Origin: Blastocystis sp. Blastoise
Taxonomy: Eukaryota > Protista > Bigyra: Opalinata
Length of the DNA: 64,000 nucleotides
Assembly (NCBI GenBank): GCA_039096225.1
Contig: JBBPEB010000015.1
Coordinates: forward strand, 558,001-622,000
Direction: 5' to 3'
Within the stretch, counting starts at the first letter, position 1. The number at the start of each line of letters is the position of its first letter. A model generated the notes under the pieces. The model worked only from the letters and a program-made list of their open reading frames with translations. It ran no database searches and had not been told where the DNA came from. Below are positions 16,179-27,143 of this stretch, piece after piece. The translations under genes were made by a program, and so were the position numbers.

Positions 16179-16883
16179 GAGAACTTGATTAACCTCGTCC
16201 CGTTTTTGTGTTTTATTTTTGGTCGTCCCGCGGGACGAGTGAGTCATAAAATGAACTTTTTTTTTACCAATAATAATTTACTCTTGTATTTTTCTTCTAA
16301 AAGAACTTCTAAAAATTTATCAAAGTCGTCCCATATATTATTCAACTTTTATATTATCTTAAATGATAGATTTTAATGTAAACACAGTATGTATGCTATT
16401 GTGATACTTGTATAAGACGACAGGAAATAAAATATAAACTTGTTTTTTGTCATTCTTAGTATATCACTCAGAATTCTGGGTATAAACTTTGTTTTGACAC
16501 TCTTATATAATATTAAATTATAAATAAAGGTACACTGAACTATTTTGAGCTTTTAATAAAAAAACGTAAACATTTCTACATTTCTTGTCTTGAAGTTGTA
16601 AATTAAGTGAGTCTATTTGTATTCAGTCAATTTCAGACTAGTAAAGTTATCACAATAAAATACTCAAAGCAAAAACACAATTTTAACAAATGTAGTGAAT
16701 TCTTTAAAATGGAGAGTATTTTCTTACAAAATAAATATAATTTTTACTATATTGACATAAATAAAGATTTATAATTAAAATAAAATAATAAACTATAAAA
16801 ATAAAAATTAACGACAAATAAAATATGAGAAAATAAATTGTTTTATTCTTGTGCTTTATTTTGTGTTTAGTCCATATTTATTT
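16179..16883 (+). repeat. Left TIR of MULE (705 bp)
   Basis: Reverse complement of 26439-27143; no mismatches seen in the stretches compared. Confidence 0.95.
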
Positions 16884-16893
16884 TATTTTCTTT

Positions 16894-19800
16894 ATGAGTT
16901 CAGCAAAAGAAATAAAGCAAGTGGCCTTGGAGGATGTTGGACTGTGCTCCCACTACAACAGCCGTGAAGAGTTGCTGAAGAGCTATTCATTATATAGATC
17001 AATCTATCACTTTTGCGTAAGACAACGTGGTGGGCATACGCTAACATATGTGTGCTCAAACAGTGATTGCCCTTTTATTGTTAAATATACAAAAAATGAA
17101 AAAGGTTTTGAAGCACAATCGTACTGTTGTTCCCACAATCATAAAGGTATTATTATATAACTATTACTATTTGTTAACACTCTATAAAGAAAACTTAAAT
17201 CAGTCCTATTCAACAAAACTAGTATATGATGATGCAAGTATATAATACTATATATTATTATTGTTATTATGCTTGATTTATTATGTTTTAATTTTTAATT
17301 TACGTAAATGAAACTCGTTTATTTATATATACAGAAAATATTTTATTATTTTAAAATTATTATGATTATTATAAAATATTTAATTATTGATAGATGATAC
17401 TTGCTTAATAAAGAATACTTATTCAAAAACTGGCGTAACATATGGAGAATTTGAAAGGTGTTTCTATTCTTTATTTATAAAAGATCCATTTGGGTTATAC
17501 TCAAGATATAAAACAGAGGCCAAAAGTCACTTTCCAAATATAGAACCAGAAGTACTAGATCACTGGTTTCAAAAATTGTTTAATTCAATATATGGAACGA
17601 ATGAAGATGGTTATCTTATGCTTCCTGCTATGCTTTATTCTATCAAACAGTACGAAAATATTGATTATAAAATTTATGTTAACAAAAATGATAATAAATT
17701 ATTTAGATTAATTGTAGTATATCATTCTGTAATAGAAAAACTTTCAGAATTATATAATAATGAGCTATTCATAGATGCTTCACATAGTCACTCCAAAGAT
17801 AAGTATATTATATATGATATTATAGTTTTATCTTCTTATAATAAAAAATATGTTCTCGGATATATGGTAGATCTAGATGGTGAAGGAAAAAATAGTTGGA
17901 TTGATTTTTTTTCATTTTTAATAAGTCGTGGTATATATTTATAATTAATCTATATTATATGTTTAATTATTAATTTTTTCTTATTATTATATATTGTATA
18001 TATATATTTATAACATTATTTTATCTATTTATTGTTAATTAATATCTTAAATTCAATCAATAATCTTTAGAATATTTATTGCTTCTACATGTTATTATAT
18101 ATTTTATAATTAATTTGAAATTATTTTATTTTTATATATAATGCCTGATAAAAGCTATTTTTTTAAATATCATTGGATATAATCGTTCAGATTTCTTTTT
18201 CCTTAAGTATTGTATTACATTTTCATTTCTATTTGTTTACTAATAATATATATATAGAATTTATTTTATTTCATATCATTTTAATATTTGTTAGTTGAGT
18301 ATTGCTCTATTTTAATATTATTTTATTTTTTATATGGTTTTTTTATTTCATTGATTTTATAAAATTTATTTATTTCACGTTATTTACATATAATATGTTT
18401 CAATAATACATTATTTTATACATATACAATTATAAAATTTACTTATTGGAAGTGCTAAAAATTATGATTTAATCATAAAAATATATATAATTTTATCTAG
18501 TATTCATATATATATATGATCATTAATATATAGGTGTGGATGAAAATTCGAAACTTGTTATTCATTCAGATGGTTTGATGGGTTTATCGGATGCTATTGG
18601 TGAGTTATTTCACTTTTCAACAAATGTTATGTGCGTTTTTCATGCAAGGAATATCATGTATTCAAAAAAAACTATTAAAGAGTCTTCTGATATAAATAGA
18701 ATCTTTTTTCAGTATGCTTCAGCTAAAGATCTTATCTCTGCAAAAAAATATTTACAAGATGAAATTGAATACGTTAATCAACGTAATATAAATGATTCAA
18801 ATGCTAATCTCGTTAAGGATATTAACACTTTAAGTGAATATTTAGATTCATGCGATAAAAGGTTTTGCCGTTTTTTTCATAAAGGATTTACTGTTACCAT
18901 GCTTACAAATAATCCTTCTGAACAAATTCATGCTCAATGGTCAGAAATTGTTAGAAAATCTCCATTATGTTTATTTCCATTTTTCTTTCATATAACCAAT
19001 AGAAAAAATATGTTTGATAACGAGGAAGATTGTATTATAAAGAAAACTATACCTTATGTCTTTCAAAAAAAGGATCAATTATGCAAAGAAGGCGATTTCA
19101 TAATGAAAGGAGAAGGAATAAATGAAATTTATATTTCGAAAAATAATAATTCAATAATTTATACTATAAAATATATTCCAGCTGCTACCTTTTATTGTGA
19201 TTGTCAATTCTGCAAAACCGAAGTTATTTGTGAACATATGATATGGTTTATGAAAGTAAATAAAATAGAATTTGATTCTCTTCCTTACGATCTTGTTAGA
19301 AGATACTTCATTTTTTTGAATATAAAAACATGTAAAAACTGTCCATTTTACCTGTTTACCTCATTTATTTATAAACCCCAATTTAGAGACTCTATATTGA
19401 TTGATACAACCCAAAATTATGGATATAGACAATTTAGGATTATTGATTCAAATGATATTGTTTTTAACAAAGAAAGTATGCTTATATATATTCTTAAAGT
19501 TAGTTTATTCATATATAGCGTTCCAGAATGAATTGAAGAATTTATATAAACAAATATTTTGTGTATATTTAATTATTATTATTTTTATATTTAATAGGCT
19601 GAGTGTGTATCAATCAATGAAATGATTTATCCACTAGACTACTCCATGTATTTAGAATTAAAAAATTATTTTGAAAAACATAATCCGTATCGTGAAGGTA
19701 TATATTTGTTAGTCATAATAAACACTGAACTTATTTTAGACATTATTTCAGAGAAAAGTTGTGAAAAGCGTGAAGAATCAATAACATTGAAGTATACAAA

Positions 19801-21208
19801 TTTTAAAGATGGTTACTCATATACTGCACCTTCTTCCTTGGCTTTTTGTTCGTTAGATGATTATATGATAAATAATACTGTATATTATATATCTAATATT
19901 ATATAATATCGTTTAAATAAAACTTTCTATTTTATTTAGGTATCACTTAAAATAATAAATATTAAGACTGGGGATATATTTTTAAAATCAATAAAACGCT
20001 CTAATACAATTAAAGAACTCAAGGAAGAATTAAATGTAAATTATGAATTATGTGTGTTTTTATTAATGTTATATATAGATAATATTTAAATTACCAGATG
20101 ATGTAACCCTGTTCATATTTTCTTCAGGTGGTTTTCTGGTTAAAGAATCTGAATCAATCAAAAGCATAATAGGTTATGACTCCATTTCAACTCTCAACTT
20201 ATATATATGTTTAGTATGATTTATTATATATTATATATCTATTTATATATAGGTACAATTAAGATGTCAATATAATAGTGAAACACTATTTTGCCATTGT
20301 ACATGTAAATAAATATTTTATTATATATATATATATATATTTTATATAGTTCCACTATGGAATATATTTGGAAAAGAACAAAAACTTGCATGTGGATCAG
20401 TTCATTTCGACTGTATATTGAATTAATTTTTGTTTTCAAACAATAAATCTATTGAATTATCACTTTTGTATATAGATACATGTGATCTACATCAATTTCT
20501 AATGTCATACAAAAACTATAAAGTTCGTATCGACATTATTTCTTTAGAATGTATGTTATATTTTCATCAATTAGTTATTTATTCTTTCAAAATGATGTTT
20601 ATAGACACAAAACAGACTATATGTATTGAATATGACTCACGACCATGCAATTCTAGAGTATTTTATAATATGAAAAAGCTGCAAATAAGCTGTATATATA
20701 TTTATTATTATTAAATTATATTTATTTTGTATAGTGGGGGAACTGGATCGAACAGCTACAAAATATTTACAACAACTTTTAGAATCCTCCTTTTTTGTTT
20801 GTGATAATATTGTTATAACAGGTATTTATTTTATTATTATATATTATTTATATAGGTGAAAAAATTCCTGAATGGGTACGTACATCTCTTCAATACGTAT
20901 CAGGCATAAAAAATATTAATATAAATTGGGACTTATCATGTATTATTTTATTTTTAATATATAATATCTCCATATTTATAGTACACACAATATTTGACTA
21001 TGAAATATTACCTAATATAAATGAAAATTCTGTGGATGGTATATATATATATATATTTTCATTATGTGCTTTGTAAAATATATTCTAATTACTATAGTAA
21101 ATCTTCAGACTCCAATGTCTATACAGAACAGCTCTCCAATATCATTAATAAGTGTTCAGTCAATAAATTCTATTATGGAGAATAAATGCATTTATGACCC
21201 AATTAAAG
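16894..21208 (+). CDS. MULE transposase (WRKY/GCM1-type Zn DBD, DDE core, SWIM, ubiquitin-like domain); probable 5' part of a fused gene ending at 26440
   Basis: YVCSNSDCPF...SHNH (C2H2 DBD); LFIDASH (D1); VIHSDG..CVFH (D2 plus CxxH); TNNPSEQIH (E); YCDCQFCKTEVICEH (SWIM); all GT-AG introns keep frame up to a phase-1 donor at 21209. Confidence 0.92.
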
Positions 21209-21246
21209 GTATGTGTTATGATTGTATTGATTAAAAAACGATTTAG

Positions 21247-21304
<58 letters not shown>

Positions 21305-21306
<2 letters not shown>

Positions 21307-24300
21307 AGCGTTTCACGACTGGCTACGCCAGCCTACGCTTGAATCTAAATAAACATAAAAAAATAATTTGTAAAAAGACTATCTTTTCATTATATAAAAA
21401 TTATTTATTTCAAATTTTGTTTTGTTTTATTAATATTATCAATAATCGTTTCATATTTTATTAATATTATCAATAATTGTTTCATAAAAAGAAAATTAAA
21501 AAATAAAAATTAACTATATATAAAATAAAGATTACATTCTATTTCATTAGTAAATATATTTAAATACTTAAAAAACTATAGTATTGTTTATAAAATAGAG
21601 TTTACACAACAAATAAGTTATTATAAAAAAACTCTAAAAAACTATAACATTTTGAAATACATATACTCACTTTTATTAAAACGAATTTTGTGCTAATATA
21701 CATATATATTTGATTTATTATTTTTATTTATAAAGAATAACTTGAATTTCATTTATTTAAAGTCACAATTACAAAAAATGAGTTCTTTTGAAAGACAAAA
21801 AACATTCTTTAAACAATAATAGTTTTGTATTTAGTGACAAAAAAACGTATTATACGGTTTTAGAAGCAATTAAAATCATTTTACCCATTTTAACATTCCT
21901 ATCAAGCAGTCAACCATGTTTAATTAAACTAATTTTTAATATTTTATGTTCTATAATAAGTCTATTTATTATTTTAATAAAAGGTAACTTGAATCTCTTG
22001 ACTTAACTATTGTAATTCTAAAAGAATAATTTTTTAAACAACTTAAAATATTTATTTATTGTAGATTTTAATATAAAACAATTTAAAAACACTCTATACA
22101 TACTTATTACAACCATATTTAAAAAATAGACTCATTTTAACATTTTGGTCAAACACACAACCACCTTTATTTCAAACAATTCTTTTATTATTATAAACAT
22201 TAAACACTCTAATACTCATTTTTACAGAAAGTGTATTGAATCTCTTCACTTAAGACAGTCAAACAGACAATTCAAAATTATTTTACCCTTTAAACTCATT
22301 ATAAAGTGATAATATTTATAGAATTGCTTTGATATGTGATTTAGGACACATTGAACTACTTTTTACAAAATTATGAGTCAACATGTGCATATACTCATAT
22401 ACTCGTCAACTCCACTTTTGACTATTTTTTTGAGAAATGCAATACATATGTAGTCTAGTTTTCAAATATGTAAAAATTAATTGTCAAATATGAATTTGAT
22501 TTGTCAACTTTCAGAAAATTTTTAGAAAAAAGATTTTTCAATTTTCAGTTTTTTAACATGTTATACTATTGACTCTACTAAACTCATTTCTTAATTAATT
22601 TTAAATATTAAAATTTATATTATTAATATGTTTTATTCTCTATATTTATTTGTTATAATTATATAAAATAATTAAATATTGACTGAGAAATTAATGTTAT
22701 AAAGTATACCCTTTTTTCAAAAAAAATAATTTTTATGTTTTGCATATATAATTTTTTATCTCAAAAGTTATTTTATATTTTGATAATATTTTTCTAAATA
22801 TATAAACTATATGTTATCTAGTTTATAAATAAGTTTTATTTATTTTTTAAAAATTAATATTGATGGAGAAATTGTCAAAACAAACTATAGTATCAAAAAT
22901 GTTTTCTTTTTTTTAAACGACTTATTTCACTAATTAAAGATTTTTAAAAACTAATTTTCTTATTTAAAGCTTATTTATGACATTTCCAAATCATAAAGAC
23001 TGACAACTGACTTTTTAAAACAAACATTGTCAGTATCAGTTCAACATGTTGTCTTAACTTTTGTAAATAAGTCACATACAGTGTCTATGAGTGATTCTAA
23101 ACACTAATCTAAACGTTTTAAGAGTTTATTGAGTTAACATTGTCTGGTGATCTGTTGTCAAAGTCTTTTAAAAACAAAATAAAATAATAAAATATGTTTA
23201 TTTTGGTATTTAGTGATTCAATATAGAGTCAAATATCAAATATATTTATAAATGATGAAATTATTGACAACAAACAAATGAAAAAATTTTAACAAAAATT
23301 TCGAACGTCATTTTTTTATTGAGTTTAACTATTGTCTCCTGTGACTTCATTTTTTAATATTTTAAAAAAATGGCAAAAACGGATGACATTTAGGTCGTCC
23401 TACATCTAAATAAGCTTTAACCTTTTTATTTTATAAAATATTGACTGAGAACTGATGATAACAAAATATACCATTTTTAGAAAAATTTCATTTTTATGTT
23501 TTTCATATAAATTAACATATCTCGGTCAATATTAAATATTAAACAAAAATATAAAAAACGGATGACATCTAGGTTGTCTTGTTTACAAATATGTTTTTAT
23601 TTTTATTATATGTTGAATATTGACTGAGATCTGATGATAACAAAATTGGGTATCAAAGATGAAAAATTTTTATAAACAAATATTTTCTTATTAAAAGATA
23701 TAATTAAAATATAAAACATATTTATGACGGATATAGAGTTAACTAAATACATTAAAGCTCAAATAAGTTTATTAAGAAGGAATGTGTTGGATATCAGTTT
23801 GTCTTTTGTCGTTATTTAAAAGATTTATTGTTGTTTCAGAGTAGTTAAGGTCATTGTCATGACAACTGAAACCACTTTAGAGTTTATAGTTAGTAATGTG
23901 TGTATTGATATGTTGTCAAGTTGTAAATATAAACAAATCTACCCGTCAAAACTATTTATAAGACCAACCCGTCAATAAAAGTTAATTTTATAAAAATAAA
24001 TATAGAGTATGTTAATAGATATAGGAAAAATAAGAAAACAATAAAAAATGAAAAACGAAAAATAAGTGTTTTTATAAAAATGAAAAATATTGGATAAAAA
24101 AAAAATAATCCAATAATTTTGGTTAAAATTTTGTGCGAAAATGGTTTTTTGCGTTTTTTAGCCAGAAATTTAGAATTTTCGAAAAATTTTTTTAACAGTC
24201 ATTTTCAGAATTGTGTTCCGGATTTTATGATGTAATTTTTATTTTATAAAAGTTAATAACAAAGTCAATAATAGTGAAAGTGTGTGAGACACCGTACGCT

Positions 24301-24319
24301 ACATGAACTAAATTAAGGA
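21305..24319 (-). mobile_element. Candidate non-autonomous Helitron-like element nested in a MULE intron
   Basis: Minus strand A|TCCTTAAT...GGCTGGCGTAGCCAGTC GTGAAACGCTTG|T: 5' TC, GC-rich hairpin 12 nt before the end, A/T target, no TSD; removal leaves a 111-nt intron. Terminus is CTTG rather than CTRR and the 5' boundary is uncertain. Confidence 0.55.
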
Positions 24320-24334
24320 TATTAATATATATAG

Positions 24335-26149
24335 ATATTAATGACAAAGAGAAACTTGACATAACTACAATCCATGAGAATACAAAGTGTATACTAGATG
24401 AAAAACAGAAAACATGTCTTCTTAGTCCTTCTGACCTTTTACCATTTTCAGATGATGATATTTCAACTATATCCAGTAAAGAATGTATATTTACATGTAA
24501 TATCATTAATCAAGAAGAAACTGATGAAGAGACAGAAAAATATGAAGATAAGCTTTATGAAAAAGCTAAAGTACATAATTATATTTATATTATAAATTAT
24601 ATATTATATTTATCTGCTTATCAAATTGGTATTTTTATATTTCCTGTAGTTTCTAGTTATTTCCTATCGTTTTATATATTATATTTGTGTATAAAAACTA
24701 TTTATTACTATATATATTATATTTTTATACTATAGAAAATTCTTAAAGAGGATTCGATTTCAGTACGAAGATCAAGTGATTTATATCTAAATGATTTTAT
24801 TATTGATACATATATTAATTATTTATGGCTGGCATTTAAATTATCAAGTCAATCTAAAGATTCTATTAATACCATTTATATAATTGATTATTTTAAAAGA
24901 ATTATAATCGATAGGCAACTGGCTAATAATCAGTCAAATGTATGTTTATAGTTTATATATTATTATTATTTATAGTACTCTAGCCTTATTAATAAAATCA
25001 TTTTGAGTAATACAAATCTAATAATAATACCATACTGTCAGTATACATTATGTTTACAAATTAATTCATTTTTTTAGTTATAACCATTGGATTCTCTATA
25101 CAGTGAGTACTGTAGCTATTAATAATATTGCTAATGGTATATATTTATTATTAAAAAATGTTTAATTGCTATTTCTTTGTTTATTTCGTTTTTAATATTT
25201 TTATCTTTGCTATATTTAGAGTTGAAAAAAAATAAACTAAGAAATTCAATAGATGTATGTAATTATATATAAAAAATTATTATTTATAAAGCTGGAAATC
25301 AGGTGCTATAACTCAATGGAACGAATTACTATTAATTATAACTGTGCAATAATTAAGTATTATTTATTTCTTATTATATTACTAATCTATTTATAGTTTT
25401 GTAAATGCTTTATTTCGAGAAATTATCAAAATGAGATGCCATTATACAGATGATGAATGTAAAGACCTTTTAAAGATATTAAATACGCAAATAAATGTTT
25501 ATGTATTATTTTTATTTTATATTACTATTTATTTAGGAATCTCCTCAACAACACAACTCATATGACTGTGGTTGCTATTTACTAATGAATACGAAATATA
25601 TTATTGAAAATTACTCAATTTGGATAAATAATCCTTCTATTAGTTATACCTTTAGCAGTAGTGTAATAAGAAGTGTTATACTAGAAAAGATGGCATTAAT
25701 GTCACGTATTCCTGGATATAACAGTGTAAAACGATGTATGTAATATTATTTATATATATTAATAAATATATAGTTTTTACTGATATTGAATCCTCAATAA
25801 ATTATATTAAAGAAAACACTCATTATGATACTATAGTAAGTGACAGGGAATATAATACTAGACAAAAATCGTTTATAGAATTTATACAATTAAATAAGTA
25901 TTTTTTAATATATGTAATTCTTTATACTCTATCTTTATTTAGCAAGATCTTCCATGATAATTTAGGCTTAACATTTAAGAATCTAAAAAACAAGCAGCAG
26001 CTTCCTATTCTTAAAAAAAAAATAAAAAAACAAAAATTGTATTATATTAATAAAGCACTTTTAATTCTGGATCCAAATCGTAAACGAACAAAACATGCGA
26101 AGAGATTTGTTGCTCGTAAAGTATCCAGAAAAAAGAATCTAACCAATTC

Positions 26150-26216
<67 letters not shown>

Positions 26217-26295
26217 TATTAAATTGTTTACTATATGATATATTATGTTTATATATATATAGTTATATTCAATTATTTTTTGCATAATTATATTC

Positions 26296-26346
<51 letters not shown>

Positions 26347-26440
26347 TATATATATATACTTTCATAATATTATTTGAATAATTATACACATTATATATAG
26401 TCGTAAAGCTTATAAGGATAAACTAAATACCACAGAATAA
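24335..26440 (+). CDS. Ulp1/C48-family SUMO/UBL-protease domain inside the MULE; probable 3' part of the fused transposase gene
   Basis: LYLNDFIIDTYINYL, IIIPYCHYNHWILY, IRCYNSM and PQQHNSYDCGCYLL; first exon has a phase-1 acceptor and no usable ATG of its own; basic C-terminus; TAA at 26438-26440. Confidence 0.88.
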
Positions 26441-27143
26441 ATAAATATGGACTAAACACAAAATAAAGCACAAGAATAAAACAATTTATTTTCTCATATT
26501 TTATTTGTCGTTAATTTTTATTTTTATAGTTTATTATTTTATTTTAATTATAAATCTTTATTTATGTCAATATAGTAAAAATTATATTTATTTTGTAAGA
26601 AAATACTCTCCATTTTAAAGAATTCACTACATTTGTTAAAATTGTGTTTTTGCTTTGAGTATTTTATTGTGATAACTTTACTAGTCTGAAATTGACTGAA
26701 TACAAATAGACTCACTTAATTTACAACTTCAAGACAAGAAATGTAGAAATGTTTACGTTTTTTTATTAAAAGCTCAAAATAGTTCAGTGTACCTTTATTT
26801 ATAATTTAATATTATATAAGAGTGTCAAAACAAAGTTTATACCCAGAATTCTGAGTGATATACTAAGAATGACAAAAAACAAGTTTATATTTTATTTCCT
26901 GTCGTCTTATACAAGTATCACAATAGCATACATACTGTGTTTACATTAAAATCTATCATTTAAGATAATATAAAAGTTGAATAATATATGGGACGACTTT
27001 GATAAATTTTTAGAAGTTCTTTTAGAAGAAAAATACAAGAGTAAATTATTATTGGTAAAAAAAAAGTTCATTTTATGACTCACTCGTCCCGCGGGACGAC
27101 CAAAAATAAAACACAAAAACGGGACGAGGTTAATCAAGTTCTC
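26439..27143 (-). repeat. Right TIR of MULE (705 bp)
   Basis: Reverse complement of 16179-16883. Confidence 0.95.

Follow-up and report, generated by a model that had tools for sequence, protein, structure and literature searches.

A predicted integral ubiquitin-like domain between the transposase and the Ulp1-type protease of a Mutator element from Blastocystis sp. Blastoise

What is encoded by three small exons that lie between the transposase and the predicted protease of a DNA transposon in the stramenopile gut protist Blastocystis sp. Blastoise? The locus falls in a stretch of 64,000 nucleotides (positions 558,001 to 622,000 of contig JBBPEB010000015.1, assembly GCA_039096225.1), hereafter called the window. 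The initial annotation, made from the letters of the DNA and their open reading frames, had read the three exons as a ubiquitin-like domain (UBL) embedded in the transposase and had offered a decoy, a proteasome-docking module, or a cis substrate of the element's own protease as possible roles. The locus therefore poses three linked questions, namely, whether the exons are spliced as modeled, whether the resulting peptide adopts the β-grasp fold of ubiquitin, and what such a domain might do in a transposon protein.

The segment sits in a 10,965-bp Mutator element (positions 16179 to 27143 of the window). The left terminal inverted repeat (TIR) of this element (16179 to 16883, plus strand) is 705 nt long and 100% complementary to the right TIR (26439 to 27143, minus strand), and a 9-bp target site duplication (TSD), ATAAAAAAC, is present on both flanks. 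These perfect TIRs and the 9-bp TSD match the combination by which Mutator elements are recognized, i.e., TIRs accompanied by a TSD of 9 to 11 bp. The transposase is represented on the plus strand by two exons, both of which have a counterpart in a paralogous element of the same genome (locus L006), whose product is annotated as the 1497-aa protein P0001. The first (17384 to 17941, given as open-frame bounds) covers the first half of the MULE core and is 52% identical to L006/P0001 over 176 aa; the second (18527 to 19528, likewise open-frame bounds, with the exon itself probably ending near 19497) covers the second half of the core together with a SWIM finger of the CxC..CxH type and is 42% identical over 328 aa. 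Matches of the first exon to the Pfam ZSWIM1-3 RNaseH-like and Transposase_mut families are weak, and on their own the window exons fall below the Pfam thresholds. Their assignment as a MULE transposase comes via P0001, to which they are 42 to 52% identical and which scores 28 bits against PF00872 (cutoff, 21) and 27.5 bits against PF10551 (cutoff, 27.6).

Further downstream, a plus-strand exon with open-frame bounds of 25537 to 25740 carries the Q..DCG motif that includes the catalytic cysteine of Ulp1-type C48 proteases. It passes the threshold of PF02902 (Peptidase_C48) with 25.4 bits (cutoff, 20.7; E value, 1.4e-5) and was recovered in a genome-wide scan too. Six-frame translation revealed an additional plus-strand open frame (25028 to 25162) with an NHW motif, which corresponds to the HNHWIL of P0001 within the Peptidase_C48 match of that protein. 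A Pfam search with this frame alone gave no match; from its correspondence to P0001, the NHW motif probably supplies the catalytic histidine of the predicted Ulp1 domain.

The 33.3-Mb genome (34 contigs) contains three near-identical copies of the element, namely, the one in the window and one each on contigs C33 (L005) and C26. The C33 copy is 98.5% identical to that of the window over the first 5.1 kb and does not have the ~3-kb repeat that is nested within an AT-microsatellite, (TA)n, stretch of the window copy (21304 to 24319). At least 25 further copies of this repeat, 87 to 100% identical, are scattered over many contigs. The C26 copy (C26:980484-1008671) has acquired ~28 kb at element position ~3906, within the second exon of the segment under study, and this insert itself holds a copy of the nested 3-kb repeat. 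Within the window copy the TIR arms are 100% identical, and several TIR positions distinguish the C33 copy from it; this points to either a very recent insertion or homogenization between the arms. Given these identical TIRs and the 98.5 to 100% identity among the copies, the element family is young.

The segment itself is laid out on the plus strand as three exons. Exon 1 (19940 to 20035; 32 codons) would contribute the first two strands and the helix of the domain, exon 2 (20079 to 20213; 45 codons) would contribute strands 3 to 5, and exon 3 (20253 to 20304; 17 codons plus 1 nt, with the end at 20304 being the most likely one) encodes the post-UBL tail that begins with VQLR. They are separated by introns of 43 nt (20036 to 20078; GTAAAT..TATAG, 16% G+C) and 39 nt (20214 to 20252; GTATGA..TATAG, 10% G+C). 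Directly 5' lies a further plus-strand exon (19741 to 19879) with a phase 0 end on ...NNT, and removal of a 60-nt GT..AG intron (19880 to 19939) brings it in frame with exon 1. All introns of the UBL region (43, 39, and 45 nt) start with GT and end with AG, and their G+C content is 4 to 16%, versus 22 to 29% in the exons of this region. The junctions up to exon 3 are all in phase 0, and exon 3 most likely leaves in phase 1. Rereading of the DNA returned the same three-exon peptide as the initial annotation, with the start at 19940 exact and phase-compatible exons flanking GT..AG introns. The whole window is AT-rich (18 to 29% G+C), and 10 to 16% of its positions are stop-free over 32 to 45 codons; since chance open frames of this size are so frequent, the support for the exons has to come from conservation and not from the frames being open.

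Such conservation is provided by sister lineages of the element. The 334-aa transposase exon finds three further MULE lineages in the genome with 36 to 42% identity, namely, L006 (contig C2:181500-191499) with its twin L007 (C4:65500-75499), L008 (on contig C5), and L009 (C4:1732000-1741999, minus strand). A UBL-like segment recurs at the collinear place in these three lineages, the transposase cores of which are 36 to 55% identical, and the motif N[IV]KTG[DE] is kept in the exon 1 piece of four lineages, that of the window included. In L006, the whole 77-residue UBL lies in one unbroken exon (L006:5357-5587); introns 1 and 2 are absent from L006/P0001, and the reading runs straight on through ...L VQ.... 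L008 resembles the window in that two introns interrupt its UBL at the corresponding positions and leave an exon 2 of 45 codons. The UBLs of the window and L006 are 25 to 31% identical and collinear (29% over exon 2 alone). The flanking introns agree as well, in that the one 5' of the UBL follows a threonine in phase 0 in both the window family and L006, and the one after exon 3 is found 94 codons plus 1 nt past the UBL start in the window, L007, and L008 and is cleanly missing in L006. The L006 junction 5' of the UBL was predicted to join ...DKT to IQAN..., and the NCBI protein P0001 has exactly that junction.

In P0001, which is the NCBI gene model from Blastocystis sp. Blastoise that represents the L006 family, the UBL occupies residues 643 to 719, between the MULE/Transposase_mut region (226 to 338) and the Peptidase_C48 domain (1017 to 1184). 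At least in this paralogue, transposase, UBL, and protease are thus parts of one annotated coding sequence. According to PMC12129017, the gene models to which P0001 belongs were picked for strictly RNA-seq-supported introns, and the genomes of the tortoise isolates measure 26 to 33.3 Mb, with 21 to 23% G+C and longer introns. Between the window family and L006, conserved coding blocks follow one another in the same order over the N-terminal zinc-finger region, the two transposase exons, the UBL region, several linker blocks, and the protease. C48 exons also lie 3' of L006 and L007 and possibly 3' of L008. By comparison with these relatives, the window family is predicted to have the same exon architecture as the paralogue. 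The shared intron positions and phases, together with the annotated paralogue in which the UBL is free of introns, support the splicing model for the window. The earlier description of the UBL as embedded in the transposase is accordingly accurate as regards the gene, since the domain belongs to the same multiexon gene as the transposase and the Ulp1 module, but it lies between the transposase/SWIM region and the protease, outside the catalytic domain.

Several further observations concern these relatives. L006 and L007 are otherwise 99.98 to 100% identical, yet they differ by about ten exact intron presences or absences in both directions, with L007 possessing two introns that are absent from L006 and L006 possessing several that are absent from L007. 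In L009 (5400 to 5856), UBL exon 1 is recognizable, an AG acceptor is missing from the next 100 nt, and what resembles exon 2 lies in a shifted frame; the UBL of this copy looks decayed. A match to exon 2 on contig C13 (L004/L010; 39% identity, with one stop) has no MULE context and was rejected as a chance similarity. At its C-terminal end, P0001 includes a fragment of an exportin of the Cse1/CAS type (residues 1318 to 1447; PF08506; E value, 9.5e-19), which probably falls within the TIR of the L006 element, a very long region of at least 1.3 kb, and represents either a captured piece of a host gene or read-through of the gene model. Word searches of the annotated proteins recovered no relatives with the 334-aa transposase exon and P0001 itself alone with P0001; over the protein lengths covered (184 to 585 and 823 to 2620 aa), they yielded no member of the window family.

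How ubiquitin-like, then, is the peptide? Sequence profile searches of the Pfam collection, which the window exons entered one at a time, aligned window exon 1 to positions 1 to 28 of PF00240 (E value, 0.098; 12.9 bits, below the cutoff of 25.4) and the L006 UBL to PF25565, the At1g33420-type ubiquitin-like family (E value, 0.054; 13.8 bits; cutoff, 27); neither reached the gathering threshold of a ubiquitin clan family. The window locus was not among the loci listed in a genome-wide scan with PF00240. In hhalign comparisons against 17 bona fide UBL domains from the same genome, residues 11 to 31 of window exon 1 were placed on residues 8 to 28 of ubiquitin (P value, 0.0022), residues 10 to 62 of the L006 UBL were placed on residues 7 to 57 (P value, 0.068), and residues 10 to 32 of a profile of the paralogues (A5) were placed on residues 7 to 29 (P value, 0.0014), with the hhalign probability never above 18% in any of the comparisons with host UBLs. 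Exon 2 alone had no match in Pfam or in hhalign runs against the host UBLs. Among PDB sequences, phmmer searches with the L006 UBL and window exon 2 returned nothing at an E value of ≤10, and the A5 profile retrieved no UBL, with a chance lipocalin match at an E value of 1. In a protein language model atlas, all of the listed clusters with a common Pfam family were ubiquitin, Rad60-SLD, or TUG-UBL clusters (scores of 0.84 to 0.87), which we treat as leads. A HMMER search of the entire protein library with L006:5357-5782 recovered P0001 as its sole true match, with no relative outside that gene; the other match, P0002, is a leucine-rich-repeat false positive. The sequence tests thus all point to ubiquitin families, yet every one of them stays below the threshold.

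The fold was predicted with AF2 from L006:5357-5599 and the seven-row A5 alignment, which consists of paralogous pieces alone, contains no ubiquitin sequences, and has the first 10 residues of its exon-2 rows misplaced; the modeling was template free. The five models are of low confidence (pLDDT of 53 to 59; for the best, pLDDT of 59 and pTM of 0.46). In the best model, strands at residues 2 to 6 and 13 to 17 are followed by a helix (24 to 34), two further strands (41 to 46 and 52 to 53), a helical turn (59 to 61), and a last strand (71 to 77). This is the element order of ubiquitin (strand-strand-helix-strand-strand-short helix-strand) and, at a pLDDT of 59, amounts to a predicted β-grasp, although the last 20 residues have a pLDDT of <50. 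A single-sequence AF2 model of the same segment is poor (pLDDT of 60), with helices after residue 24, and its β-grasp is limited to the first hairpin and helix. Foldseek comparison of the best model to the PDB gave at least 115 matches at an E value of ≤0.001, and the best 50 are all ubiquitin (E values from 5e-5; TM scores of 0.63 to 0.71 by query and up to 0.76 by target; ~20% identity). The best 50 matches obtained with VIA-align, which is independent of Foldseek, among 48,161 chains are all ubiquitin-like β-grasp domains, with 68 to 78 of the 81 residues aligned at an rmsd of 2.0 to 3.2 Å and Z scores of 7.3 to 8.0, a Z of ~8 being in the range that VIA-align itself calls common. They include OASL, FAT10, midnolin, Dsk2, Herp, the USP11 UBL, SUMO, Rad60 SLD2, and FERM F1. 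On the strength of these models, we regard a β-grasp fold as very likely for the L006 paralogue. For the window copy the likelihood is slightly lower, as the fold is assigned to it by homology, through its 25 to 31% identity and collinearity with L006. The ubiquitin-like call of the initial annotation is thereby partly supported by the predicted fold of a paralogue, at a low model confidence and with all profile tests subthreshold.

On the basis of these comparisons, we consider it probable that positions 19940 to 20304 encode an integral, noncleavable β-grasp UBL of ~77 residues, split over three small exons and located in the linker of a long, intron-rich transposon protein. The predicted domain order of this protein would be a zinc-finger/MULE DDE transposase, a SWIM finger, the UBL, ~300 poorly conserved residues, and a C48 (Ulp1-type) cysteine protease. 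The same segment could instead be a conserved linker that forms a β-hairpin and a helix and is no true UBL, its likeness to ubiquitin stemming from hydrophobic periodicity in an AT-rich, Ile/Leu/Lys-rich proteome and from a drift of AF2 toward the commonest small α/β fold. Such a linker would account for profile matches that are all subthreshold and mostly confined in their alignment to the first ~30 residues, as well as for the helical second half of the single-sequence AF2 model and the poorly modeled last 20 residues of the better one; the leucine-rich-repeat false positive illustrates the compositional noise that it invokes. It does not sit well with the two structural aligners, both of which have ubiquitin-like folds alone among their best 50 matches over the full 81 residues of a model built without ubiquitin rows or templates, or with the atlas, in which each listed cluster with a common Pfam family belongs to the ubiquitin clan. 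Moreover, exon 2 can be aligned by eye with residues 37 to 73 of ubiquitin at the right length and with gaps of at most one residue. We therefore deem a mere linker unlikely.

If the segment is a UBL, as we favor, the residues that follow its last strand bear on the kind of UBL that it is. These read VQLR in the window, VQLG in the C33 copy, VQAP in L006, and VQLP in L008. The absence of a terminal Gly-Gly that had been remarked upon for the window, where VQLR comes directly after the last strand, was confirmed, and a Gly-Gly at this position, the hallmark of a conjugatable modifier, was found in no lineage. This suggests an integral UBL that is neither conjugated nor released in the canonical way, and the segment is accordingly best classified from its sequence as a nonconjugatable UBL and not as a modifier precursor. 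C48 proteases need the Gly-Gly of the substrate in their narrow active-site tunnel. The earlier idea of a cis substrate, at least in its canonical form, is disfavored because this Gly-Gly is missing. In a broader version of that idea, the UBL would be a processing module, and cleavage directly behind it, by the Ulp1-type protease of the element or by a deubiquitinase of the host, would free a transposase-UBL fragment from the protease, as in natural ubiquitin fusion proteins. The placement of a UBL upstream of a ubiquitin/SUMO system protease in one polypeptide would fit this arrangement, and the retention of L-V-Q after the last strand in three lineages indicates that the junction is under some constraint. 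But with VQLR, VQAP, and VQLP, the lineages have neither of the two glycines that ubiquitin carries there (G75-G76) and that the tunnel of C48 enzymes requires; hence, we hold processing to be highly unlikely.

Finally, we consider it extremely improbable that the window exons are not spliced as modeled and that the UBL-like frames are relics in a defunct element or belong to a small gene of their own, for while no annotated protein was found for the window family (184 to 585 and 823 to 2620 aa) and inserts of 3 kb (downstream in the window copy) and 28 kb (within exon 2 of the C26 copy) are present, the phase-compatible GT..AG introns occur at positions common to L007 and L008, the annotated paralogue P0001 reads through the same junctions, and the family is young, with TIRs 100% identical and copies 98.5 to 100% identical.

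Within the ubiquitin superfold, the K-T..G turn of the predicted UBL is, by eye, more like that of ubiquitin/NEDD8 than that of SUMO. Recent capture from a host UBL gene was considered and rejected, as blastp against a tiny database of 18 host UBL domains gave no E value better than 0.016. With no close host UBL and with a UBL common to lineages whose transposases are 36 to 55% identical, the domain was acquired before these lineages split. It is old within this MULE clade, as judged from its retention, with shared intron positions, in no fewer than three diverged lineages.

Comparison to known systems sets this arrangement in context. Mutator-like elements with a Ulp1 (C48) domain have been described as KAONASHI or KI-MULEs in Arabidopsis and as CUMULE in melon and are further known among MuDR-type elements of rice, maize, hydra, and lancelet (PMC2836005; Hoen et al. 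2006 and van Leeuwen et al. 2007, as cited therein). Like these, the window element is a TIR-bounded Mutator with a 9-bp TSD whose coding part includes both a MULE DDE transposase and a C48 protease; unlike them, it has a predicted UBL between the two modules, with all three in one intron-rich reading frame, its TIRs are unusually long (705 nt), and its host is a stramenopile gut protist. Ginger1 transposases with a C-terminal OTU or Ulp1 domain and Helitrons with an OTU domain (PMC2836005) are comparable in that they too are DNA transposon proteins fused to ubiquitin/SUMO system proteases, but they belong to different transposase superfamilies, and no UBL has been reported there. The role of the Ulp1 and OTU domains in transposition has so far been guesswork (PMC2836005). 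A search of the full-text literature, of nonexhaustive coverage, for a ubiquitin-like domain with a transposase, Ulp1, or Mutator yielded no paper that describes such a UBL. The fusion of transposase and Ulp1 is thus already known, and it is the built-in UBL for which we found no report.

With respect to ubiquitin and NEDD8 (PF00240), the window/L006 UBL shares the predicted fold, the element order, the K-T..G turn, and the hydrophobic I/L-F pattern in strand 3, at ~20% identity; it differs in having a turn between strands 1 and 2 that is two residues shorter, in being internal and devoid of a Gly-Gly, and in a Pfam score far below the gathering threshold. A parallel in architecture is offered by the deubiquitinases USP4, USP7, USP11 (with its DUSP-UBL), and USP14, in which a noncleavable β-grasp domain is likewise an integral part of a protease that acts in the ubiquitin/Ubl system; the UBL of USP11 is also among the structural matches. 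The protease of the window belongs to clan CE (C48) and not to the USP family; the likeness is one of fold and arrangement, and regulation by the UBL would be carried over by analogy.

The internal UBLs of USP family deubiquitinases tune protease activity. By analogy, we propose that the UBL of the transposon protein most likely serves as a built-in ligand of the ubiquitin/NEDD8 type. Two docking partners can be envisaged. One is the CE-clan protease domain of the element itself, whose activity the UBL would tune in the manner of the USP deubiquitinases; the other is a ubiquitin/SUMO receptor of the host, in which case the transposase-protease would be tied to the modifier pathways of the host where transposition takes place.

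Whichever partner it binds, a UBL that is hard-wired beside a Ulp1 protease and kept across diverging lineages supplies both a concrete hypothesis and a reagent for asking which type of modifier the protease recognizes and whether the UBL binds or regulates it. More generally, domains cut into exons of 30 to 45 codons escape open-reading-frame-based annotation in AT-rich, intron-rich protist genomes, and intronless sister copies can be used as natural cDNAs for the checking of exon models. Ulp1 and OTU proteases in Mutator, Ginger, and Helitron transposons have been on record for some twenty years, and to our knowledge nobody knows what purpose they serve there. A bolder proposal, which we rate as quite unlikely, is that the element carries a matched pair, i.e., a ubiquitin/NEDD8-like pseudomodifier and a CE-clan protease. 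In this scenario, the UBL would fill or direct the protease, or else imitate a host protein that bears a modifier, and the transposase would thereby gain a switch for its own activity or evade the silencing and repair control that the host exerts through SUMO/ubiquitin. If true, such a matched pair would be the first functional handle on the Ulp1 and OTU proteases found in so many eukaryotic DNA transposons.
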